A DNA stretch of 64,000 bases, taken from Eukaryota sp. TZLM1-RC (Eukaryota; Protista; Metamonada: BaSk clade). Position numbers and translations under genes: made by a program. The notes below the pieces were generated by a model. The model searched no databases and was not told the origin of the DNA. It was given only the letters and a program-made list of their open reading frames with translations. Numbering within the stretch: the stretch's first letter is position 1; each line of letters starts with the position of its first letter. This document shows positions 1,249 through 63,362 of this stretch, piece by piece. The DNA lies in NCBI GenBank assembly GCA_040285825.1, contig JAUPSS010000004.1:3142550-3206549 (forward strand). Reading direction: 5' to 3'.

Positions 1249-1714
1249 GAACATTCTGAGGAAAACAATGAATCCAGATATCACTGGGCACATTATCAAA
1301 TTGCTATTGAAGTTGATAACAAGAAAAGCAGTGATATTTTTTGGTCCAACAATTATGAAAAAATAGGAAAGTTCTTAGTGCAAAACCCAATTTTCAACAC
1401 TGTTATCTTTAGAGCAATACTATTTATTTCCTGTTTTTTTAACTGGAAATATTACTATCAATATTCAGTGTCCTCGTTGTGATCTGTTCCAATATTGAAA
1501 AGTTTTTCAGTAAAATTTTTACATCAAAAATTTATACATGTTCAACCTTATAAAGCTGTTCTAATTTTCGAACAAAAAGTAAATTGTTGCAATTCACAAT
1601 TAACGATTCTAAATAATCTCTACAAACAAAAATAATGATAAACCCAGCGGGCAAAGGCGTTACATTAATGAACAAAACCTAAAAAATAAAACAAATGAAA
1701 TGATTCTCGTTTTT

Positions 1715-1945
1715 TGCCCACATTGGAAAGTCTGCCTTGAATTTTCTCAATGATTTTGATAATTTATGTCGTTCAAGTGGTAAGAATTTTGCAGGGAATT
1801 TATGGAAGAATCGTATCATTTTCGCCTTGTACAGAAGTATTTCCAAGTACTTAAGATTAATGATGTCCAAACTTTATAAGGATTCATGAAGAGTTGGCGT
1901 GGAGAATTTTGTTTCTTATGTGTTTTAATTTGTTTTTTTTGTTTC
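1715..1945 (+). mobile_element. CRE-like family B 3' end
   Basis: Near-identical to 45155-45380 (GKNFAGNLWKNRIIFALYRS..., followed by a T-rich tail). Confidence 0.7.
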
Positions 1946-2001
1946 TTCGGAGAAAATAAAATCTTTAATAAAAAAAATAAAACATTGTTTATATCAATAA
2001 A

Positions 2002-2988
2002 TTAAGGAGAGTCTCCTAAATCAATCACAGAAAAGGAAGAGGTTTTTGGAAGAGGTGCACCAATCAAAGCTTCATAGTCCTCTTTCATCTTTTGTTCGGC
2101 CTTGAAAATCTTTTCTCTTTGCTTATTCTGTGTAATTTCTTCTTCTCTTCTCTTCTTCTCTTTGTAAACTGCACTATTTTCATCAAACTCTGGGTTCCTA
2201 CATTGACTCAACCTGTGCATTAGATTATCTACTAAATCATTGGTTAAACTACTCAAAACTGCGTTTAAATCCCGTAATTCTTGATCTATTGAGTCCAAAA
2301 TTCCGTTTGTGATGGAACTACTGCCATGATAGTAAGAATGAATCAGTTTATCCACCGTATCCTTTCCTAGAGTAATTCTTATGGCAGCCAATGCAATTTG
2401 AGATGGAGAGTTTGTTAAAGGAATTGAGTCTAGGCACAACGAAGTAATCACTTTCTCAATTGCTTCAGTATGAGATTGAATTTCAGAAATTAAATTTAAT
2501 TTTTTTAATTGATGTAAAAACCCTAATATTGGTTTTAAAGGTAAGTGTAAATAAAGATTGAATTTCAAAAGTGACATAACGAGAAATTCTTTGGATAATA
2601 TTAAATTCTTATTAAGATTAAAATTAACCGCACAATCTTCTACAGAAATCTTCACTTCCTCTACCTTCATGGAGAGAAAAATGATGGCAGGTACGATTTC
2701 GTGGGGAGGATACTCCATCACAGAGCATTGTGAATATATGCGATTATAGAAGTAAAGAGCAGTGATCATAACGTTCTTCATGGTTGGTCCACCTTTGGAT
2801 ACTGAGTGAACGATATAGTTGGCGAAATGAAGACGAATGATCTTTTCTTCAGAGAGGGAGAGTTTGGGTACTGGAATGCCATTAGAAGTAAGGGAAGGAA
2901 CTCTGTCTGATGATTGTTGTCGAAGGTTTTCAAGGTATTCAGAAGTGAACATCCAATTAAGATGCTGGGTTGACTCCTGGAAGGTCAT
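2002..2988 (-). CDS. CCNH: Cyclin H (Ccl1/Mcs2-like), TFIIH CAK subunit
   Basis: N-terminal MTFQESTQHLNWMFT, cyclin box TALYFYNRIY..SVMEYPP..AIIFLSMKVEE, EFLVMSLLKFNL.LH.P, SPSQIALAA, C-terminal CRNPE. Confidence 0.85.
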   Translation of the reverse strand: MTFQESTQHLNWMFTSEYLENLRQQSSDRVPSLTSNGIPVPKLSLSEEKIIRLHFANYIVHSVSKGGPTMKNVMITALYFYNRIYSQCSVMEYPPHEIVPAIIFLSMKVEEVKISVEDCAVNFNLNKNLILSKEFLVMSLLKFNLYLHLPLKPILGFLHQLKKLNLISEIQSHTEAIEKVITSLCLDSIPLTNSPSQIALAAIRITLGKDTVDKLIHSYYHGSSSITNGILDSIDQELRDLNAVLSSLTNDLVDNLMHRLSQCRNPEFDENSAVYKEKKRREEEITQNKQREKIFKAEQKMKEDYEALIGAPLPKTSSFSVIDLGDSP

Positions 2989-3502
2989 AGTCTGAGGGTA
3001 CTGAAATACAGAAAGGATCCCAATAAAGGTTCGAACACCGCAAAATTAACTAATCCTTTGACCAAATTCTACAAATCAACTTTTAAAAAAATTAATCTCT
3101 TCTGAAGTTCCTCGCAGTTGATGAAATGAACACTATCAGGAAGAGCAAGAAGAAAGAGTGATTCAATTGTCAAATCTTTAGGTTCAACATCAGTGAAGAC
3201 CATATTTCAATAAGTCTTTGACGAGATGCTGGTGATGGGCAATTTCATAAGAAAGTTGTATAGTTTTAACTTGTACTGTTGCACTGAACACAAAAATAGT
3301 TGACCAAAAAAATCTGCTCTGAATGGTCAAGTTTTGAAAATCTAAAATATGGTTTTTTGTAATAATTAGGAACAAGTCTAGTGAAATGTTCTTTCTACCC
3401 AACAGTTAATCTGCAACATCGGGAAGTGTGCAAAAGGAAGTTTTCGTTGCAAGTGATGTAAATAAAAAATTCCTTCAGTCAAATTCCTAACTGATCGTAC
3501 TA

Positions 3503-4948
3503 TTGATGAAGACCCCGAATGTTGCTCGCAAGCGACGAGGAGGTGGAAAATCCCCCTTCAAGAAACACAAACAATCTCATAAACAGCACATGACTCCCTT
3601 CCGTAGTCCAAAGCCTCGACCATGGTCGAAAACATCGCCACTTCCACCTCCACATCCATCTCCTTCACCAATACCTTCACAGCCTCCAGAAACGCCAAGT
3701 CTAACCATCGGTGACATATTGAGTGATGTCATTTTACAAGAGCTTATAAAAAGGCTTCCAAAGGGTCTAGCTGATGATTTTAACCAACGTTTGTTTAGAA
3801 TCAGGATAATGAACTTTATTCTAAACTTGCAAAATCTTCAATTCATCACTGAAATTGATACACTTTCTCCTATGGAAATTGAACAGTTGGAGAATGATAC
3901 AAAGAAGGAAGTCATTTTTTATTTTGAAATCTTTTACTTTGTGAATGAGCACTTTCCTTATACTGATTTAGTTCCAATATCACAAATTACTACCAAATTT
4001 TGGGAAAAATACAGACTGTATGCGGATTTTAACGATCGAATCAACCCAGACTCTGGAATTCTAAAGTCAACTCTTGCTGATTTTATTAAAAATGACGCTT
4101 CAGTGAGTCTTGAAGTTACAATTTTAACTCAAGAAGTAAAACAAAATGAAGCAGTTTTGGAATTTTTTCAGGAATTTGTACGTAAGAAGATTGAGGTTTC
4201 GTTCAATTTTCTGGCAACACAATTCACTGAGGTAAAATTTCGAAAATTTAGTGACATGCAGAATTGGTGGGACGAAAATTTTAAATATTTGGTCTCCACC
4301 CTCACCTCACATTTTTGGACTCTTTTTCATGGTCTCATCAAGATAAATAACCAGGAAATGGTGTTTTTAAATGATTTAATTGAAGAAAAAATATCAAGTT
4401 CATGTTCTGATTACATTGTAGAATTCAGAAGAGATAATTTAGTTGAGAAATTGGAAGAAAGTGATGCTTGGAAGGAGTTTTTAGAAGCAAAAGCTGCAGA
4501 ATTATCATTTGAGAAGGATCTATTTATTAAGAAGGAAAATGCAAATATTTTAAGCCCACCTGAAGCTCAAAAAGAAGTAAAGTTCTTTATTGAAGAATTT
4601 CTACGAAGATTTCAACATTTTTCAAACCAATTGACTGATGGAACACTCAAACAAGTTGGCTTTGTTATCAAAGATGTGTATTCAGAATTAAAATTTAATG
4701 ATTTTGAAACTCTTAATTGTTTATTAAAAGAAGTATCAGAGAATGTTTTTGGAGATTTTGCTAGTGATGATTATCCGAGACGAATCGTTGTCAATAGGCT
4801 GAGTTCAATAGTGGAAAGAGTATGTTCAAATTTTGGAGTTTCTTTATATCCAAATTTTGAAGGTTTTAAAGATTATTTTGCAGATGCTAACCGATTTTCT
4901 TTGCCAGATGCCCATGCTCTTGAAAATTTACAATTACAACATCTGTAG
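3503..4948 (+). CDS. Hypothetical protein with basic/Pro-rich N-terminus (NLS-like) and helical body; ATG at 3506
   Basis: 481-codon uninterrupted ORF; RKRRGGGKSPFKKHK; no recognised domain. Confidence 0.65.
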   Translation: MMKTPNVARKRRGGGKSPFKKHKQSHKQHMTPFRSPKPRPWSKTSPLPPPHPSPSPIPSQPPETPSLTIGDILSDVILQELIKRLPKGLADDFNQRLFRIRIMNFILNLQNLQFITEIDTLSPMEIEQLENDTKKEVIFYFEIFYFVNEHFPYTDLVPISQITTKFWEKYRLYADFNDRINPDSGILKSTLADFIKNDASVSLEVTILTQEVKQNEAVLEFFQEFVRKKIEVSFNFLATQFTEVKFRKFSDMQNWWDENFKYLVSTLTSHFWTLFHGLIKINNQEMVFLNDLIEEKISSSCSDYIVEFRRDNLVEKLEESDAWKEFLEAKAAELSFEKDLFIKKENANILSPPEAQKEVKFFIEEFLRRFQHFSNQLTDGTLKQVGFVIKDVYSELKFNDFETLNCLLKEVSENVFGDFASDDYPRRIVVNRLSSIVERVCSNFGVSLYPNFEGFKDYFADANRFSLPDAHALENLQLQHL

Positions 4949-5831
4949 AAAGTTTTTTTTATTTTTTTATTTTTATTTATTTTAAAACAGGTAGAATTGA
5001 TAAGAATGATTTTGTATCTAGTCAATTTTGTGTCTTGTTTTAGTCGACCCCAATAATAAATATTTCTTTAAAAAAATAAAAATAAATATAAGTTATCTTT
5101 CTATTTCTTTGAAAATAGCTGAACTTTTTTTGTAAGAAATAATTTTACATGTGGCTGGTTTTAATCGATCATAAATTAAGAGGGGTTGCATTACTGAATT
5201 TTTCATTAATTTAATTTAATTATTTTAATCAATATTGACAAGACCATAAATATATTTTGTTTTTCGAATTATGCTCCAATTCTCTCTGAAGATAGCAATC
5301 AATTTTCAAAACTTGATGACAAACACTGCTCACCAAATAATTCGAAGCTATTTTGTCTTTGAACTACAATCTCAGAGCGTCTTTTACTTCTTAACTACGT
5401 CGTATAGCTTTATACTAAAATAATTCAAAATCTATCATAAAAAATATCGCCGCTTCCAAAATTGATGCAGAAAAGCGTAATTCATGCTTTCCACATCTTT
5501 AATTGTTCATTTAGCTGAAAGCAATCATTTGAATGTAAAAAGCACGCTTCAAACCTTACAAAAACTAATGACTTTCTTCTCATCAATAGTTAACATTATA
5601 AATTTCTGTGAAATGAACAAAATCATGATAACAATATCATCTAATGATATTTTAAAATAACAATTATTATTTTTTATTAAATTATATTACTTAATTATGT
5701 TTTACTTTGTTTTACATTTACATTATGTTTTACATTGGGTTTTGTAAACTGATTTTTATATTACTTAATCATGTTTTATTTTCTACAAAGAATCAAAACA
5801 AATTAAGTTTTAAAAAAAGTACTTAATTATG

Positions 5832-5963
5832 TTTTTCAATCGAATTAGAGAAGCTTTAGCTAGACAGCAAGCAAATCAAGATTTTGTAGAGGAAATCTTG
5901 GTTTAATGATAGTCGTCCCATTAGTTATGATTTAATTTAATCAAGTGTGCAAATTCAATAAAT
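5832..5963 (+). mobile_element. CRE-like family A, extreme 3' end only
   Basis: Matches NRIREALARQQANQDFVEEILV* plus the conserved 3' UTR gatagtcgtcccattagttatg...caataaa of other copies. Confidence 0.85.
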
Positions 5964-6662
5964 ACGATATTATGTTTTTTTATTTTTTTTATTTTTTTTA
6001 TTTTTTTATTTTATAAATTTAATATATAGTATTCAGGATATAATATTGACTAACAAATAAAAATAAAATAAAAGAAAAACAAAGGTCTGTCGTTGCAAGT
6101 CCTATATGAAATCCGATATCTAAGTACTTGTTCAATTAAGATAAGACATATTAAAAGCAATATTGTGGATGAATTGAATGATTTTATCAATAAAAACACG
6201 TCATTTAAGTTGATTTCCTGGACCAACCGAATTCTCTGGAGGTTCTACAAAGGCCTTGGTGAAATGGTTGCGACTGTGGAACTTGCTCCTGCTCAAAGAG
6301 TGTTTCACAATGTACGTTGAGATTCCGCTTTTTTGGAGGAAGCAATAAATTGATGTTAAAATGAGGTAATTTCTCTCCTTAATCAATAGTTTTTTAGACA
6401 TGGTATCTGGAAATGGGGAGACTTCTGGAGGGATTGCCCCTTTGGTGAATTTGACAAGTAGAATCTTCTTATGTGGTTTTGTGATAATTGTACTGGTGTC
6501 GATGATATCATACGTAGACTTCTTTTTTATCTTTATTACCAGGTTTGTACACCAGCTTAAGGATTAACAAACTTGTTTGAATTCTTAAATCCCGGTTTCA
6601 CACAAATGATATCAAAACTGTTCTGTCTTCCTTTCGATTAGCACCACATCAACATCTTTCTC

Positions 6663-9600
6663 ATGGATGTCTTTGATGATTCTGTTGATTCTTTCTCTGA
6701 TGATGCTTCTTTGACACCCCAGACCTCCTTTCCTTTTGAACCCCATTCTCTAAGCCACCAGCTGTACGATCTCGCTTTTAGCCCCAACACTACCCCACAA
6801 GATTTTGCTACAATCTACCAGTTACTCTGCAATGAACCTACCTTATCGGATCTTGACGTGATATACTTCCAGAACCACGCCTCTCTATTGCTCCACTCTT
6901 TCCATGAATCACCTTCGTTGGTTTTATTATCCAGTGTTGTTGGCCTGTGCTTACCTTTCCTGATTCGAAATAATTCAAAGTCAACGCTGTTCTGGTCTAA
7001 TTTTGGCCTGATGGCGAAAACCCTCAACATTGAGGAAACTTCTATATATAGTGTTGTTATTGAGTTTATTCGGCTTTTTCCAAGTAATAGTAATGGTCTA
7101 ATAGATTTATTATCAAAAATAAGCCGAACGTCCTTAAATAATTTAGATATTTCCTTTCTTGAAAATATTTTCCAAATTTTTGTGTTTCTGTTTTTCCAAA
7201 TTTTTCCAGATATTGAAAATGCCAAACTCTATGAAAAATTAATTCATCATAAACAATCCAAATTTTCAAATATTGCTTTACTTGAATTTAAAAATTACTA
7301 TATTAACTTTGCACATGAGTTGATTTCCGGGAAAGTTGAATTGAACAATATCAGTTTTTCTTTATTTTCTGTAAAAATTTCGCATCTTTTGTTTCCAAAA
7401 ATCCAAAATTTGTGTTGTGATTCTGAATTTTTGAGTGTTTGTTCGCTTTATCTTTTCTGGGTTAGCTTATTAATTGATCCTGAAAAAAGAAATATCGAAT
7501 TAAGAAAACCCCTTAAAATTAATGACCCAATTCTCTCAAAAATCAAACAATCAATTTCTCAATCATTTCATTTTGATAGGATCTTCAAAATGATTTGGAA
7601 ACAAGAATTTCAATTATTAGATGATTTAGGAAGTAATTCACCAAATATTGAACCATTATTTCATTTTTGTATATGGTTTTTATTTTCACATATCATTGGG
7701 AATAAATTGCAAGATTTGCAATCGGATTTTCAGAATTTTTTACCCTCTCCATTTGCTGAATTAAATTTAGTCATTTTTAATTTCATATCTGCACTTTTTA
7801 AAACAAATCCTTTTAGTTTAGTTATTAATTCGTTGTTTCAAACCATTAATAGAGTAAAACCTGATGTCAAATTTAAAACAATTATCATCATTTCTATTTT
7901 TAAATTTATCTCTGCCAGTCAAGACGCAGTCAACAACTTTCAAATGACTTCAATTGACCCTGATTACCTTGATTTAAGTGATGATCCCTATTATTTTGCT
8001 TACCATAAACAATTTTTGTGGAATTCTCCTGGCTTTTTGGTTAAAATTTTGAGTTTCTGCCGTGGAATTTTTTTATCTTTACAAAGTCAATCTAGCGGAA
8101 GTCAATCAGAAATATCACGAGATTTTGATCGCTTTATAGAGGTTTCCCACCTGACTTTACTCAATTTATTGACTTTTGATTCCACTTTTCGTTCGTTTTC
8201 CTTGGATTTGTTTTGTTTAATTCTTGAAGTCTTTGGTTTTATACCGTCTGCAGATTTTTTCCTTTCTTTTTTCATTGATAATGCTTTTTATTTAGATTAT
8301 TTATCTAAATTTATATCAAATTTCATCAATTTTAGTAAGCGAAATATATTTCGTTCTTCTATATTGAAAGAGAAATTGCAAACCATAAAGTTATTTAAAT
8401 CTAATTATAATCAAGAATCAATCAGCCAGGGTTATTTAACCCCCAGTCAAGAATATCAGTTAGCTAAAACGGAAAGCAGTCAAGAACCTAGTCAATCTAT
8501 CAGTCGTGATGACGTTGCTGTTTTTGAAACACCGCCTAAAACAGGTTTTAAAGGTCCAAAAACATTACATCAACAGGTCTCCTTTATTTCATTTGAGTTA
8601 ACTCAATTTGATTTTTTTGACTTGTTTCCTGGTCTTCAGAATTCTATTGACTTTTTGTGTGGTGCTGAATCAGAGTTTCCTTTGCCAGACAGTTTTTCAG
8701 ACATAATTCATTATAAATCTATTTATAGAAAGTTTATTTCTAATTGTTTGTGCAATCAAATCATCGAACTGATTAGTAGAAGAGGTTTGTTTCATGGGTG
8801 GTTTTTTAATTTAGAATCAATTCAATCAATCAATCAACCAAAGTCGAGCCTCGCTAAGATCAATTTCGTGAAGTTTCCTGACAATTATGACCTTTGTTTT
8901 GACCAAACAAACCCATGTTCATTTTTAAACCCTTTTGATTTAGTTTTATTTTCTGAATATGAGAATATTCGGCTCTTTGTAAATGATTTACCATGTTCTA
9001 ATTGTTCTTTAGGAATAGTATCTGTCGTGAGTGAAAATTTGGCTGAAATTTTAGTGAGCTCATCACTAATGAAGAAGAGCTCAACTCTTTTTATGGTACG
9101 GTTGGGGTCAATTTACCAATATTTTGTGCAAATGAACAATCTCAGAGTTTTAGAACGAAATGTTTTTTTATCTCAAATCATTAACCCCAAAAAGTCATTG
9201 ACAATCCCAAATTTTGAGAAAATTTCCATTTCTTCTGAGTCTGCCCTACAAAGGGATCAACACCACGCCCTTGACAAAATTTTGCTCCTCGACGGTGGAT
9301 TTCTTCTCATTGATGGGGTCAAAAATAGTGGAAAAACCACGACTTTGATTGAAACTGTCAGGACATTGGTAAATTACAATAAAAAAGTGTTGATCTGTTG
9401 CCAAGATTCTCAGTTTGTTTTTCAATTCTTTTCTAATTTCTTTATTCATCCAGTTTGCATTTGTGAAGATTATGTACCTGAGGAGTCTTCAATGTTGGCG
9501 AATTTCTATATTGTTGTTTCCACTTTGACAATGACGAGTTCTGATTATTTTAAACCTCTCAGCAATCATTTTGATTACATTTTGATTGATGATTGCGATT

Positions 9601-10361
9601 GTTTTGATGAAGTTTCAGTTATTCTACCCTTCAAATTAGCTAAACCTGATGGTTGCGTTGTCCTGTTTGGAGATTCCCATCTCGCTAAAAATGGGTCAAT
9701 TATATCTCGTATTGGGTCAAATTTAAAAGACTCTGGAAGATGTGTTAAGCTTTCTGGCAATTTTTTTAATGTTTCTCAATTGATTAATTTAATGAAGCAC
9801 GTTTTTTACAAACATCAGCCCATTCCTGTCTTATTTCAACAACCAGAATTAAAAAAGGTCATTATTTCGAAATTCAAACCGTTCATGTTCTTCTCTGTTC
9901 TTTCGATTGGACATAAGATTAATAAATGTTTTAAAAACGAACAAGAAGCTTGTGAATTGGTCACTGTTTTGAATCATTTTAGTTTTCTATTAGAGCAGAG
10001 AATGAACGAATCAAATATTAAGGAAGTTTTTAACATTAGCATTCTTTCACCTTTTCAAAGTCAATTGGATTTGATTATGTCTAAACTAGCGAAATATTCT
10101 TTTGAATCTATTTCATTGGAACCTTTGCTATTTTCTGATATTAGAGAACAGAAGTTTCATTTTGCTTTTGTCTCGTTGGCAAAAGGCGATATCTATATCA
10201 ACTCGTGTGAATTTATCAAAATCTTGGGAATTGCAAAACTTAATTTATTTATATTTGGAAATACAAGCCAAGTGGAAATGATACCTGACACGTTTTTACA
10301 CGTCATCAAGACCTATGCAAGTGATAACTCGGTTTGTTTACCAACAACAAAATATGTGTAA
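6663..10361 (+). CDS. Sen1/Upf1-like (SF1B) helicase-domain protein, catalytic motifs degenerate
   Basis: C-terminal motifs in SF1B order: LLIDGVKNSGKTTT, KKVLIC, IVVSTL, FDYILIDDCD, VLFGD, NEQEA, ISILSPFQSQ, AKLNLFIFGN. Long helical N-terminus as in Sen1. Confidence 0.7.
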   Translation: MDVFDDSVDSFSDDASLTPQTSFPFEPHSLSHQLYDLAFSPNTTPQDFATIYQLLCNEPTLSDLDVIYFQNHASLLLHSFHESPSLVLLSSVVGLCLPFLIRNNSKSTLFWSNFGLMAKTLNIEETSIYSVVIEFIRLFPSNSNGLIDLLSKISRTSLNNLDISFLENIFQIFVFLFFQIFPDIENAKLYEKLIHHKQSKFSNIALLEFKNYYINFAHELISGKVELNNISFSLFSVKISHLLFPKIQNLCCDSEFLSVCSLYLFWVSLLIDPEKRNIELRKPLKINDPILSKIKQSISQSFHFDRIFKMIWKQEFQLLDDLGSNSPNIEPLFHFCIWFLFSHIIGNKLQDLQSDFQNFLPSPFAELNLVIFNFISALFKTNPFSLVINSLFQTINRVKPDVKFKTIIIISIFKFISASQDAVNNFQMTSIDPDYLDLSDDPYYFAYHKQFLWNSPGFLVKILSFCRGIFLSLQSQSSGSQSEISRDFDRFIEVSHLTLLNLLTFDSTFRSFSLDLFCLILEVFGFIPSADFFLSFFIDNAFYLDYLSKFISNFINFSKRNIFRSSILKEKLQTIKLFKSNYNQESISQGYLTPSQEYQLAKTESSQEPSQSISRDDVAVFETPPKTGFKGPKTLHQQVSFISFELTQFDFFDLFPGLQNSIDFLCGAESEFPLPDSFSDIIHYKSIYRKFISNCLCNQIIELISRRGLFHGWFFNLESIQSINQPKSSLAKINFVKFPDNYDLCFDQTNPCSFLNPFDLVLFSEYENIRLFVNDLPCSNCSLGIVSVVSENLAEILVSSSLMKKSSTLFMVRLGSIYQYFVQMNNLRVLERNVFLSQIINPKKSLTIPNFEKISISSESALQRDQHHALDKILLLDGGFLLIDGVKNSGKTTTLIETVRTLVNYNKKVLICCQDSQFVFQFFSNFFIHPVCICEDYVPEESSMLANFYIVVSTLTMTSSDYFKPLSNHFDYILIDDCDCFDEVSVILPFKLAKPDGCVVLFGDSHLAKNGSIISRIGSNLKDSGRCVKLSGNFFNVSQLINLMKHVFYKHQPIPVLFQQPELKKVIISKFKPFMFFSVLSIGHKINKCFKNEQEACELVTVLNHFSFLLEQRMNESNIKEVFNISILSPFQSQLDLIMSKLAKYSFESISLEPLLFSDIREQKFHFAFVSLAKGDIYINSCEFIKILGIAKLNLFIFGNTSQVEMIPDTFLHVIKTYASDNSVCLPTTKYV

Positions 10362-10518: not shown

Positions 10519-12756
10519 TTAGCCATTTTTCTTCATAAACGCTGATATTTGTGATTTTAAATCTTTTAAAGCATTATTTTTCTGCACGACTAAATTTGAA
10601 AGTCTTTGGTTTTCCACCAATAAACTATCAATTTTTGACTGATCTTCTTGTTGATTTTGACCTATCGACTTTTCTAAATGTTCCAACTTATCAAGAAATG
10701 ACATCACACTACCAACGACTGGATTAACCTTTAATACATCCAATTCAGATTGTAATTCAAAAACCCTTTGTTCTGAGCGAGCCCTCGCAATTTGAGCCTC
10801 ATTAAGCTTCTTTCTCAGTAGAGACAACTCGTTTTTGACCTCTAGTTGCACGACTTCTGCTGAATTTTCCATTTCTGTTAATGTTTTCGCATGATGTTCC
10901 CTCAGTCTTTTGATTTCTTCACAATAATGCTCCTTCACTTGGTTAACCCGTTCATCATACCTCATTTCACAAAGTCGTAAATCTCGTGTCGTCTCAGCTG
11001 TCTGGCCCCCAATCTGCTCAGTTAGTGTTTTAATTTGCGTATTTAGCAAACTTATTTTTGAATTTAATCCAGATACTTCTGTTTCACGTTCTCCAAGAGC
11101 TTGTTCTAACGACTGAATCCTCCTTTTTGAGCGTTCGTTTACTGAGTGGTAAGCGGAGTGAAGTTCATCTAGATCTTGACGTAATCTTCGAACAGTCTCC
11201 GAATCATCAGATACTTGCAATTCATCCAATCCATAAACTTGACATTCTTGGTTAATTTTTGATGGGGCAATCGATTTTGATTGATTAATTTTTGATTGAT
11301 TGGGTCTAGAGGTGTCTCTTGGTTTTGAGGTACTTGGCGCAGGTTGGGTGGCAGGTCTTCGTATTGGTTTTTCTTTTTCAGATAATTTTTTCTTCAGCAT
11401 TACAATTTGTGAATTTGCCGCAGCTAATTTAGTTTCTAATTCTCGAATTCTTTTCACCGAATAATTTTGTGGCACGGGATGCGATACTGCAGCTGGATCA
11501 GAATTTTCAAGACTTTTCAACGCATTTCTGAGCGATTCAATCATTTTATTGAGCTCATGCTTCTCCAGTTTGTGTTGTTCACTATTAATTTTAACTTGTT
11601 TTTCTGCATCTACTGCCCTCTTTTGAGCAACATCTAACTTACTACTCAGAGTATGAATTTCCTTATTTAAAGATTCATATCTATTTGTTTTAGTGGTTTT
11701 AAATTCAGAAATATTTTGCAAGAGTTTAGAATTTTCGGTTTTGAGGGAATTAATCTGAGCATCAAAGCGCTCCCGTTCTTGTTCGAAGTTGTAATTCATT
11801 CTATCAATAGTTAATCTTAATAATTCTTCTGTTTGTTTTAATTTGTTTAATTCTGATACTAATTCAAGTCTTTCTGTTTCTGCATCTTTTTGACCTCCAT
11901 TTTGAGCTATTCTTGAATTTTCCGTTGAATAGTGTGGATTTTGAGCTTGGCTTACCACTTGTTCTTGGGGGTCGAGTTGTTGTGGATTACCACATAAATC
12001 TTCTTGACTGGCTACTTCTGGTTCTACATCCTTTTGCAACGAAACTTCCTCAAATGCTTGTGATTCATTTTGGAGATTAATGCCTTTTTGAGCTTCTTTG
12101 TGACCTCGTAAAGCAGAATGTACCCTTTTTCTTGGTGAAACTGACACAAGATCAGGTTTTTTAGCTTGTAGTTCTTTCAGTTTTTCCAGTCGTGAAACAT
12201 CAAAATCGTTAGCTTCTTGCATTGTTTTCTCCTCTCCTCTCTCTTCTTCCTCAATCAAAACTTGAGCTTCATTCAGTCCTTCCTTCGCATCAAAGTTAGA
12301 GTTAGGGTTAGGGTTGGTTTGTGGTTGCTCAACTGCTAAAAGATTGTACTGAGAGAGCGGCTGTGAATCCTGGGAGATCCTAGCTTTGGAAAAGTCAGCG
12401 ATGGATGCAGAGATACTTGGTAAGGATGAAAGATTATCAGATGAGCCAAAAGTAGAGTTGTTGATGGTTGAATCTTGGGAAAGTAGAAGTCTGCGTTTAG
12501 GTTTAGGGTTATGGTTGGGTGTTTTGGAAGTAGGTCCTTTTTGGAGATTAGGTTTGATTGGAGAGCCCATGTCTGTACCGTCCTTGAGAACAGCTTCTCT
12601 AGCAAGTTCACCAGAAAGTTTGGATTCACGTGGAAGCTCAAGACTTGCTTCGGAGAGGGAAAGGTCTCCATTTAAGTTTTGAATAAAGTCATCACCAACA
12701 GAATTCTGAGCTGGATTAAGACGTTTAATAGGAGAGCTTTCAACGGGATCCTGCAT
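10519..12756 (-). CDS. Long coiled-coil protein, possibly CEP162-like centriolar protein
   Basis: Disordered N-terminus and heptad-rich C-terminus. The C-terminal pattern (YCEEIKRL..H; NPVVGSVMSFLDKLEHLE; QKNNALKDLKSQI) resembles the CEP162 C-terminus. Confidence 0.6.
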   Translation of the reverse strand: MQDPVESSPIKRLNPAQNSVGDDFIQNLNGDLSLSEASLELPRESKLSGELAREAVLKDGTDMGSPIKPNLQKGPTSKTPNHNPKPKRRLLLSQDSTINNSTFGSSDNLSSLPSISASIADFSKARISQDSQPLSQYNLLAVEQPQTNPNPNSNFDAKEGLNEAQVLIEEEERGEEKTMQEANDFDVSRLEKLKELQAKKPDLVSVSPRKRVHSALRGHKEAQKGINLQNESQAFEEVSLQKDVEPEVASQEDLCGNPQQLDPQEQVVSQAQNPHYSTENSRIAQNGGQKDAETERLELVSELNKLKQTEELLRLTIDRMNYNFEQERERFDAQINSLKTENSKLLQNISEFKTTKTNRYESLNKEIHTLSSKLDVAQKRAVDAEKQVKINSEQHKLEKHELNKMIESLRNALKSLENSDPAAVSHPVPQNYSVKRIRELETKLAAANSQIVMLKKKLSEKEKPIRRPATQPAPSTSKPRDTSRPNQSKINQSKSIAPSKINQECQVYGLDELQVSDDSETVRRLRQDLDELHSAYHSVNERSKRRIQSLEQALGERETEVSGLNSKISLLNTQIKTLTEQIGGQTAETTRDLRLCEMRYDERVNQVKEHYCEEIKRLREHHAKTLTEMENSAEVVQLEVKNELSLLRKKLNEAQIARARSEQRVFELQSELDVLKVNPVVGSVMSFLDKLEHLEKSIGQNQQEDQSKIDSLLVENQRLSNLVVQKNNALKDLKSQISAFMKKNG

Positions 12757-36380: not shown

Positions 36381-37577
36381 TGCTGATGTGATTGGATTGA
36401 TCGGATTGCGCAAATTCAGAAAGTATAATGCTACTGTGAATTTCACATATTCCCCTGTGAAGTTCACTCCTGTTTTCCACTTTCTCAGTCTCTACTCACA
36501 GACTGTAAGAGACATGTAGCGTCATTTGACAAAGACAATCATGATCTTCATCGTGATTCGCTTCTGTCCCTAGCGTTTTACTTGGGTTGAAGCTTTCTAA
36601 TGGCATCTCGAAGGAAAATGTTAACATTGAGCTGAACGAACGAGAGCTGGAAGCCCTTTTCAATACTGTTGACGATATCTCTGTTCATTTAGACAATCTG
36701 TAATAAAGTAAGTTATTTTGTAAGTAAATAGTTGATGTTTTTTGTTGTTTATTTGAACATTATTGGCACTTTATTGTGCTGAGAAGCTCCAGAACTGTGT
36801 GTTCTAGGTTTTCTGTGTTTTATGTCTACATTATTAAGTAAAAGTTGAAAACTAAGGCCCACAGATGTCGTAGGGAGAAACCAGACATTGGTGCAAGATC
36901 AAAATGCTAAATTAAATTATGAAAGAATTTAATCTTTTATAATCTTTTTTTAATTATAACTGAATCAAGCTGGGTTACCCAATACAGCTGTGTAGTTTTC
37001 GGTTCACTGGCTTAATGAACAAACATTCAAGAACAGGTTTTGTGAGTTATTCGCCACACGAGCATAAGTCAACACCATCCCAATTGAGCTGTTTATATTC
37101 CACGTAAAGTTAAAACACATTGCTTCATCTACTGTTCTGTACAACGTTCTTCAAGGTTTATGACGTTGATCAAATTGATTTTCTTGACTTTGAACTTCAA
37201 GCTATGCTTTGTAGTATATTGGAGCTTCCAAAACATCAATTTGAACTGATTTATTGATCACTTCTGATTTAATTAATTTTTTATGATGAATGACTCAGTC
37301 AATTTGTTGGCTGAATAGCAACAAAATGTCAATAATGACTCAAATTTTTACCTTTTTATATACAATTTTCAAAACAACTACTCCTTTAAATTGTAACAAT
37401 TTCGTTCTGGCAGATTGGAAATCCATTTTTGGATAATGATAATTAATGCAATTCACTGGTATTTAAAACTCAATATCCCCATTTTGATAAAGTTTAGTAT
37501 CTCTCTCTTATCCGAGACCAAGATTAAGTACTTGTTACATACTTGTATCCAGTGTCTGTGAGAACATATTCCCTTGT

Positions 37578-53060: not shown

Positions 53061-55319
53061 CTAACTAAGAAATAGTATTTGATCAGCCAGTATTAATGAA
53101 TCTTTCAGTCCATTCCGTACTGAATACTTACCAACATCCCCAACAAAAGCAAGCTCTGTGTCAAAGTCTTCAATGGAAAATGGTCCTGAATCACGAGCTA
53201 ATTCGTTCAGCTTTTGCCTACACTGGGACACTAAATCTGCCAATAAATTAATAAAAAAACGACTCATTCTAGTAGTTCGTTTGGTTAAAGTAGTCACACA
53301 TGAGTTCCAACTAGATAAATGCCTTACAACTTCAAACAATTTTTGTTCAAAATCTTGTATTTGTGTAACAGAAAAAGATTGGGAATAGCGGTGTAATGAT
53401 TCATACAGCTCCAGTAATGTTAATATTACAAAACCGCCATTATTCCATGAATCAATTTTGTTGGAATATGCGGATAATAAATTTAAAGCAGCTTGCTGAA
53501 TACTAATTTGTTTGGCCGACAATAGTTCCGCTCCAAGACTTCCAATGAGAAGTGAGTGGACGGTAGAGAATTCTGAAGCAAGAAAGAGCGAGGTGGCATA
53601 GACTAAAAATGAACCAAGTTTGAGATCACTCGTGTAGATAGATCGGGCCTTGACTGAGATTGATTTAAAAACAAATTCTTTTGAAATATTTAATTTTTTG
53701 GTTAAGAAGAGAATATCATCATTTTCTGAAAACCTACCAAATTCAATTACCTCAGGAATCTTGACATTTCTGGATATAAGTAGACCAACAATCCTAGATC
53801 TACAAGAATCATTTGGATGAAAAAGAGCGGCACAAACCGCCCATCGCCACAAACCTAGTTTCTCTAGGTTAAAACAAACTTCTAAAGGAATTTCTTGATT
53901 TAATATTCCTAATCCTGATAATAAAATATGAGTAACAAATACTGAAAAGAAATTACGAGGTTCATCATTAAAAGACCAGGGGTTGTGTAATTTTTGAATA
54001 GTGATTGGTTCCCCCGAGAATGATTTAATTAAATTAAAGATAATGTCTATGCTGTGATTCTCCTCGTTTTTAGGCGAATTAATAATTCCTTGGTCTATTA
54101 AAGTACAAAATTCAGAAACTAAATCAACAATTTTGGTACCAGGTTCAATGTTATACCATAGATAACAGGCAAAGGCAACTAACCAATCATTCCCGACTGT
54201 CATTGACACGTCACCAGCCAAAATTGCCAGAATAGGAAAGAGGTCAAAAAGTGGATGACTGTCGGTCATATTATTGACTGCTGACACTATTAACGGTCGA
54301 GATTCCCCTGACCTTGATGACGTGATCAGAGGGGCAATTTCAGGAAACTTCTCAAGACTCAATGCTGTAGCTTTCAATATATTACCACGCAAAATGTTGG
54401 TAAAAATATTAGCCAAAACAGAATTATTCCTGACCGTCTCATCATCAATCACAATTGATTGATTGCTTAACACATCACCACACCAACTGGACAAATCTCG
54501 TATTCTCTGATGGTAAAGTCTATAATCATTAGCAGTATAGTCGTTCTCATTGAACAAAACCCGAGAATTTTCGCTTGATATTCCCCACAAAGTAGATATC
54601 AAAGAAATAACTTTGGGGAGTCTTGTTGAATAACTTGTTCCTTTAAACATTAAACTGAGGGATTTGCAGAGATTGCTGGTGACAAATGGGGATTTTAGCA
54701 TGGCTAAGGGTACGGGATGAGAACTAAAGTCAACGCTGGATAGTATCGAATCACAAATACAAGTAATTAAATGATTTTCTATTTCGTCCTTTTTAGGAAT
54801 CACTTCTGGCTCAGGTTCTGGGTAGGGTGGTGCAGATTCCATTGCCTCCATCATTGGTTCTTCTACTTCCACATCCTCTTCCCCTTGTTCTTGGGGAGGA
54901 GAAGGGGCATGGAAAAGTTGGGATGTGGAGGGAACTGCAGGTTCAGGAGACACAGACTCCGAAAACATGGAGAAGGAAGGAATAGGTGAATATTGGAGTG
55001 GTGGGACAGGTTCATCAAGGGAATGATCGCTATCTTCTTCCTCTTCAAAAAGATGAGATGACGTAATAGGGTGTCGTGATGGTGGAGGAAAAATGCGAGA
55101 AGTGGGGGGACGGTCAGATTGGGGTGGCGAAGGTCCTCGATGCTGAGCAGGAACTTGATGCAGAGAAGAAGTGATTGGTGCTTTAGGACCAAAAACAGTA
55201 GGGGATGCTCTGTAGGCAGGTGGTAGTCTTTCCGTTGAAAGCTCTGTTGTAGGAATTTGTTCAGGAATAGACTCATCTTCCGATTCCGATTCATCAAAGG
55301 CAAATGTGACAGGAGACAT
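53061..55319 (-). CDS. Nucleoporin Nup96 (Nup145C)-like, stand-alone
   Basis: LSSWC, IF..IL.G.I.KA..L, LAILAG, DWLVAFACYLWY, DIIFNLIK, LEKLGLWRWAVCAALF, L..KL.I..E.V..S..VKAR: Nup96 domain pattern. Confidence 0.7.
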   Translation of the reverse strand: MSPVTFAFDESESEDESIPEQIPTTELSTERLPPAYRASPTVFGPKAPITSSLHQVPAQHRGPSPPQSDRPPTSRIFPPPSRHPITSSHLFEEEEDSDHSLDEPVPPLQYSPIPSFSMFSESVSPEPAVPSTSQLFHAPSPPQEQGEEDVEVEEPMMEAMESAPPYPEPEPEVIPKKDEIENHLITCICDSILSSVDFSSHPVPLAMLKSPFVTSNLCKSLSLMFKGTSYSTRLPKVISLISTLWGISSENSRVLFNENDYTANDYRLYHQRIRDLSSWCGDVLSNQSIVIDDETVRNNSVLANIFTNILRGNILKATALSLEKFPEIAPLITSSRSGESRPLIVSAVNNMTDSHPLFDLFPILAILAGDVSMTVGNDWLVAFACYLWYNIEPGTKIVDLVSEFCTLIDQGIINSPKNEENHSIDIIFNLIKSFSGEPITIQKLHNPWSFNDEPRNFFSVFVTHILLSGLGILNQEIPLEVCFNLEKLGLWRWAVCAALFHPNDSCRSRIVGLLISRNVKIPEVIEFGRFSENDDILFLTKKLNISKEFVFKSISVKARSIYTSDLKLGSFLVYATSLFLASEFSTVHSLLIGSLGAELLSAKQISIQQAALNLLSAYSNKIDSWNNGGFVILTLLELYESLHRYSQSFSVTQIQDFEQKLFEVVRHLSSWNSCVTTLTKRTTRMSRFFINLLADLVSQCRQKLNELARDSGPFSIEDFDTELAFVGDVGKYSVRNGLKDSLILADQILFLS

Positions 55320-55439
55320 TTGTTAAAAGAACAAAAAAGATGTAAAATAGTTGCAACTTGATGTGAAGAATGAATTTCTATCAAAACGCACTTCTGGCTT
55401 TTGACCAATTCAAGCAATCTTGATAGATGTTAAGCATAC

Positions 55440-55537
55440 TTTAGTTCTATCACTATATGATATCACGATCAAATGATAGTTAAAGCAGCAACAGCACAAT
55501 ACGCGTACAGGTACGCAATACATGGAAAAACACTTGT
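55440..55537 (-). ncRNA. Candidate Fanzor omega-RNA scaffold region
   Basis: Lies immediately 3' of the Fanzor RPEAFGR motif; two hairpins (55503-55516 and 55447-55479). Boundaries unknown. Confidence 0.35.
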
Positions 55538-57446
55538 CTATGGGGTCTCCCGAACGCCTCAGGTCTTTCATTGTAGTAGTGCTCACTTATGGCATTCTCC
55601 AGTTGGTTTCTGGAAGCTGAGATGTCCCTCGACCAGAGTGTCTGACATTTAGGGCAAACAAACTTATCATTGTTTACCCTCCCATCATCGTGATACAACT
55701 TTTGATTGAATACCTTACAGCAATTCGTTTTGGCAGATGTGTAGAATTCATCTCCATTAGGCTTCACATATGTAAAATGTTTCTGAATCTCCTTCAAAAA
55801 GCGCTTCCTTGGGGTTTTCACAGATTGTCTTGATGGCCCATCACCTCCACTACCAAACCAAATTATGGTTTCTCTTCCATTAGCCATTAGTTTAATTTTT
55901 TCAATAAATCCCATTATTCTATTTTGCCTTCTTATAAAAAAATCAAACTTGTTGCGGCGCAGGGCTCGGCGATCTCCATTTATCAGCAGTTGGTCTAGTA
56001 TAGTTCTCGGACGGAAGTCGGGATTGCTGATTTCTTCCTGTGTCGGTACCCACATCAAAGGCATTGCTACTTCATTAAGATATTTGTGTAAATTCTTAGC
56101 AAAATAGCAATTTGGTGATGCATGGGTCAGGACCGGTGGGTGAATGATCTTCCTTGCCTTTGGATTGAGAACAAGGTCCGAAAGTTGATGATCAACATTG
56201 TTATTATCAATTCTTGATCCAATTGAATAACCACACAAATTTTTGTGATTAGGATCAATTGCACAAAATGAATATTCACATGGATCAACTGGCGGAGGCT
56301 CATAGGCGTCGTCAGATCTTCGGCGTTGCCTTGGACGGACCTGTTGTTGAAGTCTAGCGTTTCGCTTCCGACTCTTTGCAGGTATATCGAGTTCCCCACT
56401 GGCTATGGTGGTTGCCAATTCTCTGGCTGTCCGGCGATTCTTATTTTTTTGGGGGCAAAAGAAAAAGTGAAGAGGACTGAAACAGCATCTGACGTGATTG
56501 TGTAAGTGAGATACTTCTTTTTTCTGAAAAAGGCAAACGGATCTTTCAGCAGACAGTGGTTGGCATTAAAAAAGAGAAAATGCTTTTCCAGTTGTTGACC
56601 AAAAGGGATAAAGCCAGGAGAATAACTGGCGGATGGGCACACGGCATTTCTTCGCATGGTGTCAGATGCAATATTTTCCAGAAAGGATAAAGAAGTTAGC
56701 CCAGCAGTGAATAAGAAGGTGATGTTGTTTGGATTGAGATCAACATTGTCCAGCATCAACATAGTGTCAAAACGATGAGGGTCGGCAACTTGCTCAGTAA
56801 ATAGGTCCATTATGTACTCATGGTGATCATCATCATACCATGTGCGCAAAGAGTCAGGAATAGTGGCTGCAGTCGTGTTCACCACCAATGAAGCATATTT
56901 CTTTGGGCAAGGGCACTCAAAGAAGGTAGCCATTGTCCGGAAGAAGTTCAGCTTCCAGGAGACAGGGCCATCAGTAAGTATTTGACAAAAGCTGTTCGCC
57001 ATTCGCAGTGCGCGAAAGCTTTTGATGTCAGAGTGGCACCAGTTGTCGGTTCCCTTCTAAAAGCCAATTTGAGAAAACGGCCAGCCAGGTCGGAAAGAGA
57101 CATCATTGAGTGCGCGGTACATTTCCATATGATTCTCGAATGGGCATCTCACAGTCGGATGAGGTACCATTACAATGTCTTGCCATTGATACCAAAACTG
57201 TTGTTGATATAGCCAGAAAGCCATTTCCGGATATTGCAAGACGAACAGCTGTGCTAACTGGGCAGTAAGCACAGTGACAGTTCGAATATAGCGAAACTGT
57301 CTTTCCATTAAAACAAGAGCTGCAGTAGAGAAGAACTGAGCAGCACTTGCTGGAACTGTCGTCTTGCTGTCGTTTATTGGTTGCTCACGACGGTTAACCT
57401 CCCAGGGGAGTACACGCCCTCGACGTGGCAACTCTGGATTTGCCAT
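55480..57446 (-). pseudogene. Fanzor: Fanzor1 (eukaryotic TnpB-family RNA-guided nuclease), ~655 aa after repairing one in-frame TAG (57057-57059) and one 1-nt deletion (56444-56455)
   Basis: RuvC-I CAIDPN; IIWFGSG..P; rearranged RuvC-II DEFYTSAKTNCC; CPKC; RuvC-III WSRDISASRN; terminal RPEAFGR. Upstream WED-like motifs CPSASYSPGFIPF and TITSDAVSVLF; N-terminal KTTVPAS..FF. Confidence 0.85.
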
Positions 57447-57577
57447 TGGGGTGAATTTGTCATTTGAGAAAAGATCAGACAGTCAACAATAAAAATTTGA
57501 TTTATTCACAACTTCTTACATCTATACAAATAAAAAGCCTGAGCAAAATGATAACTAAACACTATAATACGTGATAT

Positions 57578-58547
57578 TTAAGCTGCCTTAACTATTTTCT
57601 TTGTTGAAAGGGTTACAGTTGAAGGAGTTTTCTCGGTGATAACAGTAGCATATCCAATCAAGAAAACGTGTTGTTTTAATGAGTCCGTATAAAGTTTTTT
57701 TGGGGCATTGACAAAACAGGTCCACCTGAGTTTTTCATTTTGCAGATTTGGGTCCATCCATAAACGCTTTTGCATAAATTGGGCCCTTGTTCTCATTCTC
57801 ACTGGTGTTATCTTCTCCATCACTGTCCTATTGTTCTTTTAATAAACTTTGTCACTTCTGTCACTGATTCTGATATTCTCTATCAATGCTAAATATACAC
57901 TTTTATTATGAACATGAACATTTATACATATCGAAAACTCAACCTCAATACTTCAACAGCTCATCCAATGGAGACAATCCAGATACATGGATGTCAAAGT
58001 GGATGTCAAAGCGCTTACCCAATGATCTGGTCCAATTTTTGCCAAATAATCACTGGCTTTTGGAGAGACAATACAGATCTCTTCACAGTGGGATTGGTAT
58101 TCTGCAACTGTCAAAGCCCTAGCTGTTTCCCACACTTTAATCAATAAAGCTTTGTTTCTAAATCGTTTTGCTACATTATCTGCAAGATGCTTCACACAAT
58201 AACCATGATACTGATTGGGGAAAATGTAGCTCACAGCATCAATCAGACCCTTCTGCCGGTCAGATAAGAAAGTCCAATTACTTGTTCTCAACAAAGCATG
58301 CAGATGTTGCAAGAAAAAACGCCATTCTCTACCGTTTTCTATTTCACAAATACCAAAGGCAATGGGATAAATTCTACCTAACGCATCTACTGTGCAAGCA
58401 GCCAGCAATACACCACCAAAATCACCAGTTAAGTGTGTTCCATCCAAAGTGATCAGAGGCCTACAGAAGCGAATACTATGTAAAGTAGAGTTAAACGAGA
58501 GGAATAGGCGTTGAAATCGTGAGGTTTGTGGACAAGTTTGTAGACGT
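57578..58547 (-). pseudogene. MULE/MuDR (Mutator) transposase, N-terminally deleted and frameshifted
   Basis: RFQRLFL..FCRPLITLDGTHLTG.FGGVLL.A..VDA....PIAFG..E.EN..EW.FFL..L..FLSDRQKGL..AV..FP...H.YC..HL..N: classic MULE domain. Confidence 0.9.
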
Positions 58548-58584
58548 CATTGGTAAGAAGTTTACTGGTGGAAGGTTGAATCGG

Positions 58585-58642
58585 AGAAGGTCCCGTTTTT
58601 GCAAATTTATGTTGACAAGAGGTCCTTTTTTGTCAATTTCTC
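58585..58642 (-). repeat. Putative MULE left terminus
   Basis: Minus strand begins GAGAAATTGACAAAAAAGGACC, with a second copy CAAAAACGGGACC, just upstream of the transposase remnant. No matching right TIR or TSD found. Confidence 0.5.
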
Positions 58643-58788
58643 AGTTTTTTTTCATAATGAGGATCAACTTGACACTTCTTCAATCCTAAAATAGAAACCA
58701 CTCAACCTAACCATGACTCTTGACAGGACAACATTCACAACTTCCTTCGTGACCATGGTACCTCTACCATCCTGTCAATTACCATCCT

Positions 58789-59121
58789 GTGAATTCCAAT
58801 AGAAATTACAATAATACTCTATTCGGAATTGTTGTGTTGATAACCAATGTCCGCAGACCAGTATCTGCTTCCTTTCAAAACTCTCGTCGATATTCATCTG
58901 TCGATAACTTTCTCTCATCTGGATCTTTTCGCTCTGATGAAGACCCTTCCAAGCTTCAGACACGTCTCAACCAAGTCCAACAAGAACTGATTGATCTGAC
59001 GAAACGCTATGCTTCTTATAACGCGTACGCCAGAGTCAAGGAGTTTCAACTCGCTCTGGAAGAAAGAGATTCCATTATTTCATCTCTCCACAACGATATA
59101 ACTCTTGAGTTAATTTTATAA
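58789..59121 (+). other. Short ORF with coiled-coil-like C-terminus, unknown (possibly a gene fragment)
   Basis: LQTRLNQVQQELIDLTKRY..ALEERDSII; followed by AATAAA; no in-frame ATG. Confidence 0.25.
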
Positions 59122-60137: not shown

Positions 60138-60493
60138 CATACCTGGGCATGACACCCACCCTCGTTTGTCATGACACTGTCATGACACGTTTGTCATGAC
60201 AATTCCGTCATGACAATCATGACACTCATGACAAAATGTTAATTTATTTTTTTTAGAAAATTTTATTTTTTTATTTTTAAAACTGGAATAATTATTGAGA
60301 TAAAAAAAATGTTAATTTATTGGTTGCTAATAAGGTCAAAACAGTTTTCATTCAATAAATGAGGGTGGGTGTCATGCCCAGGTATGTTTTATTGTGATGT
60401 TCAACTATTATAACAAGTGACTGAACTACTAAAATCAGACTGTCATAAACCATGACAAAAAGGCTGTTTGTCATGACGTCATGCCCAGGTATG
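60138..60493. mobile_element. 356-bp hAT-type MITE with an extra internal right TIR
   Basis: 16-bp perfect TIR CATACCTGGGCATGAC; exact 8-bp TSD TATTCAAC (60130-60137, 60494-60501); internal 26-bp perfect TIR at 60361-60386; subterminal TCATGAC repeats. Confidence 0.88.
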
Positions 60494-63088: not shown

Positions 63089-63235
63089 ATCAGTTTTTTG
63101 TTTCATTTTTAATTTGTTTGAAAAACTTTTGAGACCAATCTACAAATGCCTTAGTAGCATTTGGTAGATCCACTTAGATACATCAAGGCTTTGTTCTGTG
63201 AAAGCAGTAGGTGTATTCAAGTGAGGTAGCCCATT

Positions 63236-63362
63236 GATGAAGATCATGATCTTCTTTGTCAAATGACGATACATGTCTCTTACAGCCTGTGAGTAGACAT
63301 TGAGAAAGTGGAAAACTGGAGTGAATTTCACAGGGGAATGCATGGTATGTGAAATTCACAAT
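63236..63362 (-). repeat. ~125-bp dispersed repeat shared with 36433-36552 (+)
   Basis: Both read SPVKFTPVFHFL..YSQ.VRDM.RHLTK.IMIFI. Confidence 0.7.

Follow-up and report, generated by a model that had tools for sequence, protein, structure and literature searches.

A decayed Fanzor1 transposon copy holding a Mutator-like element, and its intact relatives, in the metamonad Skoliomonas litria

Fanzor nucleases are marked by the replacement of the canonical RuvC-II glutamate with glycine or proline and by an alternative conserved glutamate further downstream (PMC10530073). The same two residues were described by Bao and Jurka as specific to Fanzor1, at G500 and E536 of SPu-1-1p, along with the TnpB-type motif D-X(125,275)-[TS]-[TS]-X-X-[C4 zinc finger]-X(5,50)-RD and with Fanzor1 genes that lie inside MuDR-type ends flanked by 9-bp duplications (PMC3627910). 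Solved Fanzor1 structures are available for SpuFz1 of Spizellomyces punctatus (8GKH, 9CEU-9CEZ), PpFz of Parasitella parasitica (9CF0/1), and GtFz of Guillardia theta (9CER). Here, we analyzed a 64,000-nucleotide stretch (the window) of contig JAUPSS010000004.1 from Skoliomonas litria (Metamonada, BaSk clade; assembly GCA_040285825.1, in which proteins are named 'Eukaryota sp. TZLM1-RC'). An initial annotation, made from the letters of the window alone, had reported a Fanzor1 gene there in association with a Mutator-like element (MULE). We found that minus-strand positions 58776 to 55368 are very likely a dead copy of a family of Fanzor1 transposons of S. litria that are ~2.9 kb long, carry a single long gene, and lack terminal inverted repeats (TIRs).

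The gene of this family resembles the solved Fanzor1 enzymes in its full-length architecture, with ~500 residues of the modeled relative P0007 aligned at Z scores of 18 to 21. It shares with them a glycine in place of the RuvC-II glutamate, the alternative glutamate in a D-E-[FY]-x-T-S context, a C4 zinc ribbon, the RD..A..N motif, and an RP..F.R tail. It differs from them in having only 13 to 15% identity and in the position of its disordered segment, which is an Arg/Lys-rich linker between the WED and RuvC halves in Skoliomonas and an N-terminal region in other Fanzors. The element also resembles the IS200/IS605 elements with TnpB and omegaRNA (e.g., ISDra2), because it is compact, has no TIRs, encodes a RuvC and zinc-ribbon core, and has a nuclease gene that points to a conserved right end, the predicted start of the guide. 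Unlike those elements, it has no TnpA, it encodes a much larger protein that has a REC part of eukaryotic type and a rearranged RuvC-II site, and its right ends lie just 5' of co-oriented host start codons.

Nanopore R9.4 reads with Illumina polishing were the basis of the assemblies of S. litria and two sister strains, and the genome paper makes no mention of Fanzor or TnpB (PMC11316075). Our literature search likewise found no paper in which Fanzor was linked with Metamonada or Skoliomonas. The paralogous loci of S. litria (L001, L004, and others cited below) lie on multi-megabase contigs of the assembly. For all searches, we used the three coding pieces of the window gene (A, B, and C) separately or natural intact paralogs, and for the fold comparison we used the intact relative P0007 and window piece C, each as an AlphaFold2 (AF2) model.

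The element and the decay of the window copy

A search for further genomic copies, as the initial annotation had proposed, yielded both intact copies and the ends of the element. Comparison of L011 (4209-7081) with L012 (4205-7081), which are 97.9% identical and have diverging flanks, gave a full element of 2,873 bp with an uninterrupted 637-codon gene at each locus, and P0101 and P0104 are uninterrupted 637-aa open reading frames (ORFs) in the S. litria genome. As judged from these sequences, the Fanzor family appears to be alive, or to have been so until very recently. The alignable part of L011 is confined to 4625-7077, which leaves the window copy short of ~416 bp at its 5' end (Table 1). 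Neither tblastn nor blastn detected a further Fanzor copy or remnant within the 64-kb window.

The three minus-strand ORFs that had been joined into one gene are present where the initial annotation placed them. Pieces A (57446-57060) and B (57056-56406) are in one frame, with a single TAG between them (57059-57057), just as had been seen. Piece C (56418-55483) is in a different frame, and the frames of B and C are both open from ~56575 to 56403. Together, the three pieces cover intact relatives from one end to the other (P0007, 604 aa; P0008, 592 aa; P0101 and P0104, 637 aa), which bears out their assignment to one gene.

Alignment with the relatives identified three lesions in the coding region. 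Across the window's TAG, where the paralogs have CAG, the intact P0101 and P0104 read IGFQKGTDNW. The second lesion is in the C5/A7 run, and the one-base repair had been placed there correctly. The run is C5A8, with a continuous frame, in L009, L011, and L012; C5A7 in the window, L001, and L004; and C4A8 in L010. Intact paralogs continue as ..FSFAPKK-NKNRRTARELATTIASG.. across the frameshift site, and the subfamily proteins, like the intact P0101 and P0104, read ..FSFAPKKNKNRRTARELATTIASG.., which corresponds to window frame B as far as APKK and to frame C from there on. The A7 state common to the window, L001, and L004 could be either inherited or recurrent. The third lesion, which the initial annotation did not include, is the loss of the stop codon. 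In L001, L004, L005, and L009, the gene stops with TAA after ..RPHR, the 18 codons by which the window ORF is extended are hydrophobic, and all homolog alignments end at 55537-55546. The native length is 129+1+204+9+294 = 637 codons, exactly as in P0101 and P0104; the earlier estimate of ~655 aa had included the 18-codon stop-loss extension.

Two other explanations for the change of frame were considered and rejected. One was the 5-bp difference at 56409, through which gene model P0016 reads. This deletion is private to L001, where it rejoins the frames by chance and so gives rise to P0016, and six paralogs (P0009, P0010, P0025, P0080, P0101, and P0104) place the true frameshift site at the A run. 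The other was an intron bridging frames B and C, but there is no GT between the conserved ..FTFSF and the stop.

Differences between the window copy and L004 number 34, 41, and 39 at codon positions 1, 2, and 3, and those between the window copy and L001 number 54, 35, and 54. This flat distribution over codon positions indicates neutral drift. The window locus is a neutrally decaying, 5'-truncated pseudogene and not the potential nuclease that had been put forward. Because natural intact copies (P0101 and P0104) are in the same genome, no reconstruction is needed, and any nuclease candidate would be those copies rather than the window locus.

It is very unlikely that the locus is instead a live gene in which the TAG undergoes readthrough or recoding, the frames are joined by a programmed -1 slip or were separated by an assembly error in the A run, and the long C terminus is native. 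Such a gene would have to accommodate just three small lesions, one of which is in a slippery C5A7 run in a Nanopore-based assembly. A code in which TAR specifies Gln occurs in some other metamonads, and the CAG-to-TAG change would be silent under it. However, TAG, TAA, and TGA each end well-supported genes in this genome, including the neighboring Nup96 gene, which ends in TAG, and the window TAG is therefore a nonsense mutation rather than a reassigned codon. Furthermore, the intact copies have CAG, A8, and TAA and need no recoding, any GT..AG intron bridging the frames would always remove conserved residues, and the flat substitutions, the loss of ~416 bp at the 5' end, and the MULE in the leader also speak against a live gene.

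Three side observations concern the element and its copies. In the 5' region that the window copy lacks, L011 (4234-4458) and L012 (4230-4454) have an open 74-codon ORF (MLAEHILDGRERSEVF..) that could be a second small gene or could be due to chance. At the truncation point of the window element, positions 58765-58794 form a tandem 15-nt duplication (TACCATCCTGTCAAT / TACCATCCTGTGAAT, plus strand), the outer unit of which resembles the Fanzor right end when read on the minus strand (GGAATTCACAGG). Finally, insertions in the Fanzor copies of L001 (7243-7944) and L005 (6250-6827) have ends that match a short repeat at window positions 60257-60308, which had been annotated as a miniature inverted-repeat transposable element.

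Table 1. Features of the Fanzor1 locus in the window
Feature	Position	Strand	Details and basis
Dead copy of TIR-less Fanzor1 element, 5' truncated and interrupted by MULE	55368..58776	-	Corresponds to L011 4625-7077; blastn against six paralogous loci, 89-96% identity
Target-site duplication, 9 bp, left copy	58643..58651	-	AAAAAAACT
Nested nonautonomous MULE, 941 bp	57702..58642	-	Inverted ends; PF10551
Inverted ends of MULE	58642-58621 and 57723-57702	-	17/22 positions match
MULE transposase-core remnant ORF, ~164 codons	58447-57956	-	PF10551, E 1.9e-16; PF00872, E 1e-5
Target-site duplication, 9 bp, right copy	57693..57701	-	AAAAAAACT
Fanzor1 coding piece A, 129 codons, N-terminal helical part	57060..57446	-	92% identical to P0101 residues 1-129
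Nonsense mutation, TAG (paralogs CAG, Gln)	57057..57059	-	DNA alignment with L001 and L004; CAG also in L009 and L010
Fanzor1 coding piece B, reading in the frame of A as far as ..FSFAPKK	56445..57056	-	Alignment to P0101, P0104, and P0007
C5A7 homopolymer run with frameshift	56444..56455	-	One A fewer than C5A8 of intact copies; paralog alignment
Fanzor1 coding piece C, basic linker, split RuvC, zinc ribbon, to native end ..AFGRPHR	55537..56443	-	PF07282, E 2.3e-6; 94% identical to P0101
AIDPNH, RuvC-I Asp	56262-56245	-	Piece C
WFGSGG, Gly at old RuvC-II site	55860-55843	-	Piece C
GDEFYTS, relocated Glu	55755-55735	-	Piece C
CC and CPKC, zinc ribbon	55725-55714 and 55656-55645	-	Piece C
SRDISASRN, RuvC-III	55632-55606	-	Piece C
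RPEAFGRP	55566-55543	-	Piece C
Stop loss, CAA (TAA in L001, L004, L005, L009)	55534..55536	-	ORF runs 18 more codons to TAA at 55482-55480
3' noncoding tail to right end, expected site of Fanzor omegaRNA scaffold	55368..55533	-	Homology to all copies stops here
Host Nup96 gene, co-oriented	53061..55319	-	PF12110, E 6.2e-20

The nested Mutator-like element

The initial annotation had noted a MULE transposase remnant and a MULE-like left end upstream of the nuclease on the same strand. Both are real; the remnant matches the PF10551 transposase core (E 1.9e-16), and a TIR starts at 58642. From these features, the nuclease had been read as MULE-associated, which is to say that a Mutator-like element would carry Fanzor1 as cargo, as the MuDR-type Fanzor1 elements of Mucorales do, and that the MULE ends and transposase would mobilize the nuclease. 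The locus is indeed like those published elements (PMC3627910) in having a Fanzor1 gene, MULE ends, and a 9-bp duplication in one place. However, the insert, which starts with GAGAAATTGACAAAA.. and finishes with ..TTTTGTCAATGCCCC on the minus strand, lies wholly on one side of the gene. Both of its ends and both copies of the duplication (58651 to 57693) are upstream of the Fanzor ATG at 57446, and because the second inverted repeat comes before that ATG, the MULE does not enclose the nuclease. MuDR-type Fanzor1 elements have the Fanzor gene between their MULE ends, whereas the ends at the window locus enclose only a 941-bp piece with a transposase remnant in the leader.

Six other copies in the genome are not linked to a MULE, a result that the initial annotation had named in advance as refuting its reading. 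At the insertion site, L001, L004, L009, L010, L011, and L012 are uninterrupted, with a single copy of the 9-mer and no MULE sequence, and two of these six elements are intact. The empty sites of L001 and L004 read ..ATTATGAAAA(A/T)AAACTTTA... We found no MULE end near the Fanzor right end of the window, and there was no MULE at the loci of the related intact Fanzor families in strain TZLM3-RCL (RCL). Given the six empty sites and the MULE's own ends and duplication, which enclose only 941 bp, the MULE association is refuted, and we regard carriage of the nuclease as MULE cargo as extremely improbable. Thus, the MULE is a later insertion in the 5' leader of the Fanzor element and not its carrier. 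In itself, it is like other nonautonomous MULEs in having imperfect TIRs, a 9-bp duplication, and a transposase-core remnant; it is internally deleted, with ~164 transposase codons left, and is unrelated to the nuclease.

Fanzor1 identity and relatives in sister strains

Next, we examined the residues that define the nuclease. All of the motifs that the initial annotation had listed (RuvC-I, the glycine, the relocated glutamate, the C4 zinc ribbon, RuvC-III, and the terminal RP..F.R) were located in piece C. Piece C conforms to the TnpB-type motif, with D55 (in AIDPNH) followed by T227-S228, CC, CPKC, and R264-D265. In alignment with distant homologs, the RuvC-I aspartate, G189, E224, the zinc-ribbon cysteines, R264, D265, and N271 are invariant. 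G189 (in WFGSGG) and E224 (in GDEFYTS), which are 35 residues apart, are invariant in 18 homologs and align to the matching positions of SpuFz1. The DPN at RuvC-I, which had been taken as a distinguishing mark in place of DPG, is not distinctive because SpuFz1 has its RuvC-I aspartate in the same I-D-P-N context.

Profile searches place the gene with Fanzor1 once intermediate sequences are included. Piece C passes Pfam PF07282 (Cas12f1/TnpB zinc ribbon) at 28.1 bits, above the cutoff of 26.3. A profile that included bridging metagenome homologs reached SpuFz1 at 2.6e-17 and PpFz1 at 9.4e-17, with TnpB chains at ~1e-2. With a Skoliomonas-only profile, nothing significant was found in the PDB (best E, 0.86), and phmmer with piece C alone gave no match among PDB sequences. 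The lack of a significant match with the Skoliomonas-only profile agrees with the earlier view that this is a divergent clade from a poorly sampled lineage.

Comparison with known structures had been suggested for a repaired protein; we carried it out with the intact relative P0007 in its place, and the match to Fanzor1 extends over the full length. The AF2 model of P0007 (pLDDT 83.4) matched SpuFz, PpFz, and GtFz in Foldseek over ~500 residues, with E values down to 5.7e-13 and TM scores of 0.57 to 0.59. In VIA-align, the same model matched Fanzor1 structures with Z scores of 18.4 to 21.1 over 454 to 509 residues, and Cas12o, Cas12j, Cas12f, and TnpB with scores of 10 to 13.5. For the AF2 model of window piece C (pLDDT 72), the best Foldseek match was SpuFz1 (E 9.5e-6). 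Taken together, the profiles and models show that the Skoliomonas Fanzor1 clade is truly divergent in sequence and that its predicted fold is assigned unambiguously. Together with the motifs and the PF07282 match, they uphold the call of a Fanzor1-type RuvC nuclease with glycine at RuvC-II and a relocated glutamate.

A prokaryotic TnpB, present as a contaminant or recently transferred, or a Fanzor2/IS607-type element can hardly be what the gene represents: although its sole Pfam match is the generic Cas12f1/TnpB zinc ribbon and the best, nonsignificant PDB match of the Skoliomonas-only profile is a TnpB-like 'Transposase' chain, the copies lie on multi-megabase eukaryotic contigs beside Nup96, CRM1, VPS51, and similar genes, the full-length P0007 fold is far closer to Fanzor1 structures than to Fanzor2, TnpB, or Cas12f, the element contains no TnpA or serine recombinase, and a piece C scan of 185,579 bacterial and archaeal genomes gave 40 pattern matches and 0 confirmed, a collection that cannot hold a protist and so argues only against a prokaryotic origin.

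Intact relatives of the window gene are also found in the sister strains, as families P0007, P0008, and P0079 in TZLM3-RCL and P0086 in GEM-RC1. The intact RCL copies fall into three size classes, 604 to 605 aa (four copies), 592 aa (eight), and 596 aa (at least five); those of GEM-RC1 measure 589 aa (at least four) or 590 aa (one). Alignment of four RCL copies showed ~99% identity in the 5' regions, a sign of recent activity.

Two further loci with Fanzor copies have features of their own. At L003 (5380-5420 and 7889-7905), an older, diverged right-end-like motif (GGAATCCACAGCAGTA) precedes the intact P0007-family copy, and a 13-nt sequence, CTTATTTGACT(G/A)A, occurs just before the left end and again just after the right end. 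This repeated flank suggests either that one site received more than one insertion or that insertion itself created a duplication. Beside the same P0007 copy (51-4733 and 10935-11966, both on the minus strand) are genes for a 526-aa protein with DUF8286 and a TnpB zinc ribbon, a 991-aa Peptidase_C48 protein, and a PolB-exonuclease protein. At L002, positions 3531-3899 (minus strand) and 9427-9795 (plus strand), with their flanks, form an inverted segmental duplication that contains a P0001-type Fanzor copy and the start of an RBBP4-like WD40 gene. As annotated, that gene (start, 10286) appears to miss a first exon, which begins ~25 nt past the Fanzor right end.

Right ends, the candidate guide, and placement beside host genes

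The intact 637-codon gene encodes a helical REC/WED part at its N terminus, a linker that is disordered and basic and is probably a nuclear localization signal, and a split RuvC nuclease with a C4 zinc ribbon. By analogy with the solved Fanzor1 enzymes, a function can be proposed for this protein. An omegaRNA made from the element's 3' end would be bound by it, the guide would be the flank just past the right end (at the window copy, the Nup96 leader), and the protein would then cut matching DNA. The window copy is disabled by the loss of ~416 bp at its 5' end, the 941-bp MULE in its leader, the CAG-to-TAG change, the loss of one base from the A8 run, and the change of its stop to CAA. The MULE inserted later into the 5' leader, with its 9-bp duplication, and the copy has since drifted neutrally.

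The 3' tail of ~165 nt and the terminal motif are conserved among copies. In the window, the terminal motif (..TTTTGATAGAAATTCA) is damaged, with the last few bases lost; intact copies end in ..GAAATTCACAGT. The termini are kept as ..TTTTGATAGAAATTCACAGT in the window's family, ..TTTTTTGAAATCCACAGTA in the P0007 family, and ..GTGTGAAATTCTCAG in the P0001 family. We also considered whether the right-end motif is a general promoter element and rejected this, as the window has 26 matches versus 21 expected.

Several results qualify this reading. By sequence comparison, a direct link to the solved Fanzors requires intermediate sequences. The tail folds no better than shuffled sequences (single-sequence z, -1.56), it had no Rfam match at a permissive threshold, and RNAalifold over eight right-end regions from several families gave 0 consensus pairs. 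No transposase gene or target duplication was detected for the Fanzor element itself, and neither inverted ends nor a convincing target-site duplication was found, with the 13-nt repeated flank at L003 as the sole exception. With regard to the window lesions, A7 could in principle be a homopolymer miscall in a Nanopore R9.4 assembly polished with Illumina reads; the same assembly calls A8 at this run in L009, L011, and L012.

We also examined where the right ends lie, using 13 copies from three families and two strains. In 9 of the 13, the right end is 8 to 62 nt before a same-strand ATG; by a rough estimate, random intergenic placement within 62 nt, with orientation counted, would be expected in ~3%. 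The Nup96 ATG is ~47 nt (47 to 55) downstream of the right end of the window element, and the right end of L011 is likewise 47 nt before a gene, in this case for a DUF383 protein. The distances are 8 nt at L004 (a 446-aa gene), 10 nt at L010 (a VPS51-like gene), 62 nt at L009 (a DnaJ-like gene), and ~25 nt at L002 (an RBBP4-like gene). The four intact RCL copies have gaps of 43, 43, 10, and 548 nt, with L003 43 nt before a 163-aa gene without a Pfam match, L007 43 nt before CRM1, and L008 10 nt before a kinase gene. At L005, the nearest downstream ATG on the same strand is 124 nt from the right end, and L001 and L012 have no such co-oriented gene after the right end. The gaps vary among the copies, and the right ends are not fused exactly to the ATG.

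A related observation was made elsewhere in the window, where two copies of a ~110-nt repeat (36433-36565, minus strand, and 63230-63362, plus strand) end in ..ATGTGAAATTCACA(G/A)T, which is the Fanzor right-end terminus. They lie upstream of co-oriented ORFs, by 52 nt from 36433 (minus strand; 114 aa) and by 25 nt from 63362 (plus strand; at least 204 aa). No Fanzor coding sequence was detectable beside either copy.

The window locus itself is ordinary, being one more decayed transposon copy that holds a second transposon. To the pattern of Fanzor right ends just 5' of host start codons, it adds the Nup96 case. From this pattern, we tentatively propose that the Fanzor1 elements of Skoliomonas may settle in the last few dozen bases 5' of co-oriented host ATGs, ending in the ..GAAATYCNCAG(T) terminus common to families that are ~40% identical in protein, and we consider the chances of this to be somewhat short of even. 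Should targeting (by an RNA guide or by a transposase) and not survivorship account for the pattern, this would amount to a new rule of insertion for Fanzor/TnpB elements, and the predicted guide would be the leader of the host gene. What the wider family means is that Skoliomonas, in the BaSk clade of Metamonada, is home to a Fanzor1 clade that is divergent in sequence and includes natural intact copies. By analogy with the characterized enzymes, these intact copies would be ready-made candidates for compact RNA-guided nucleases.

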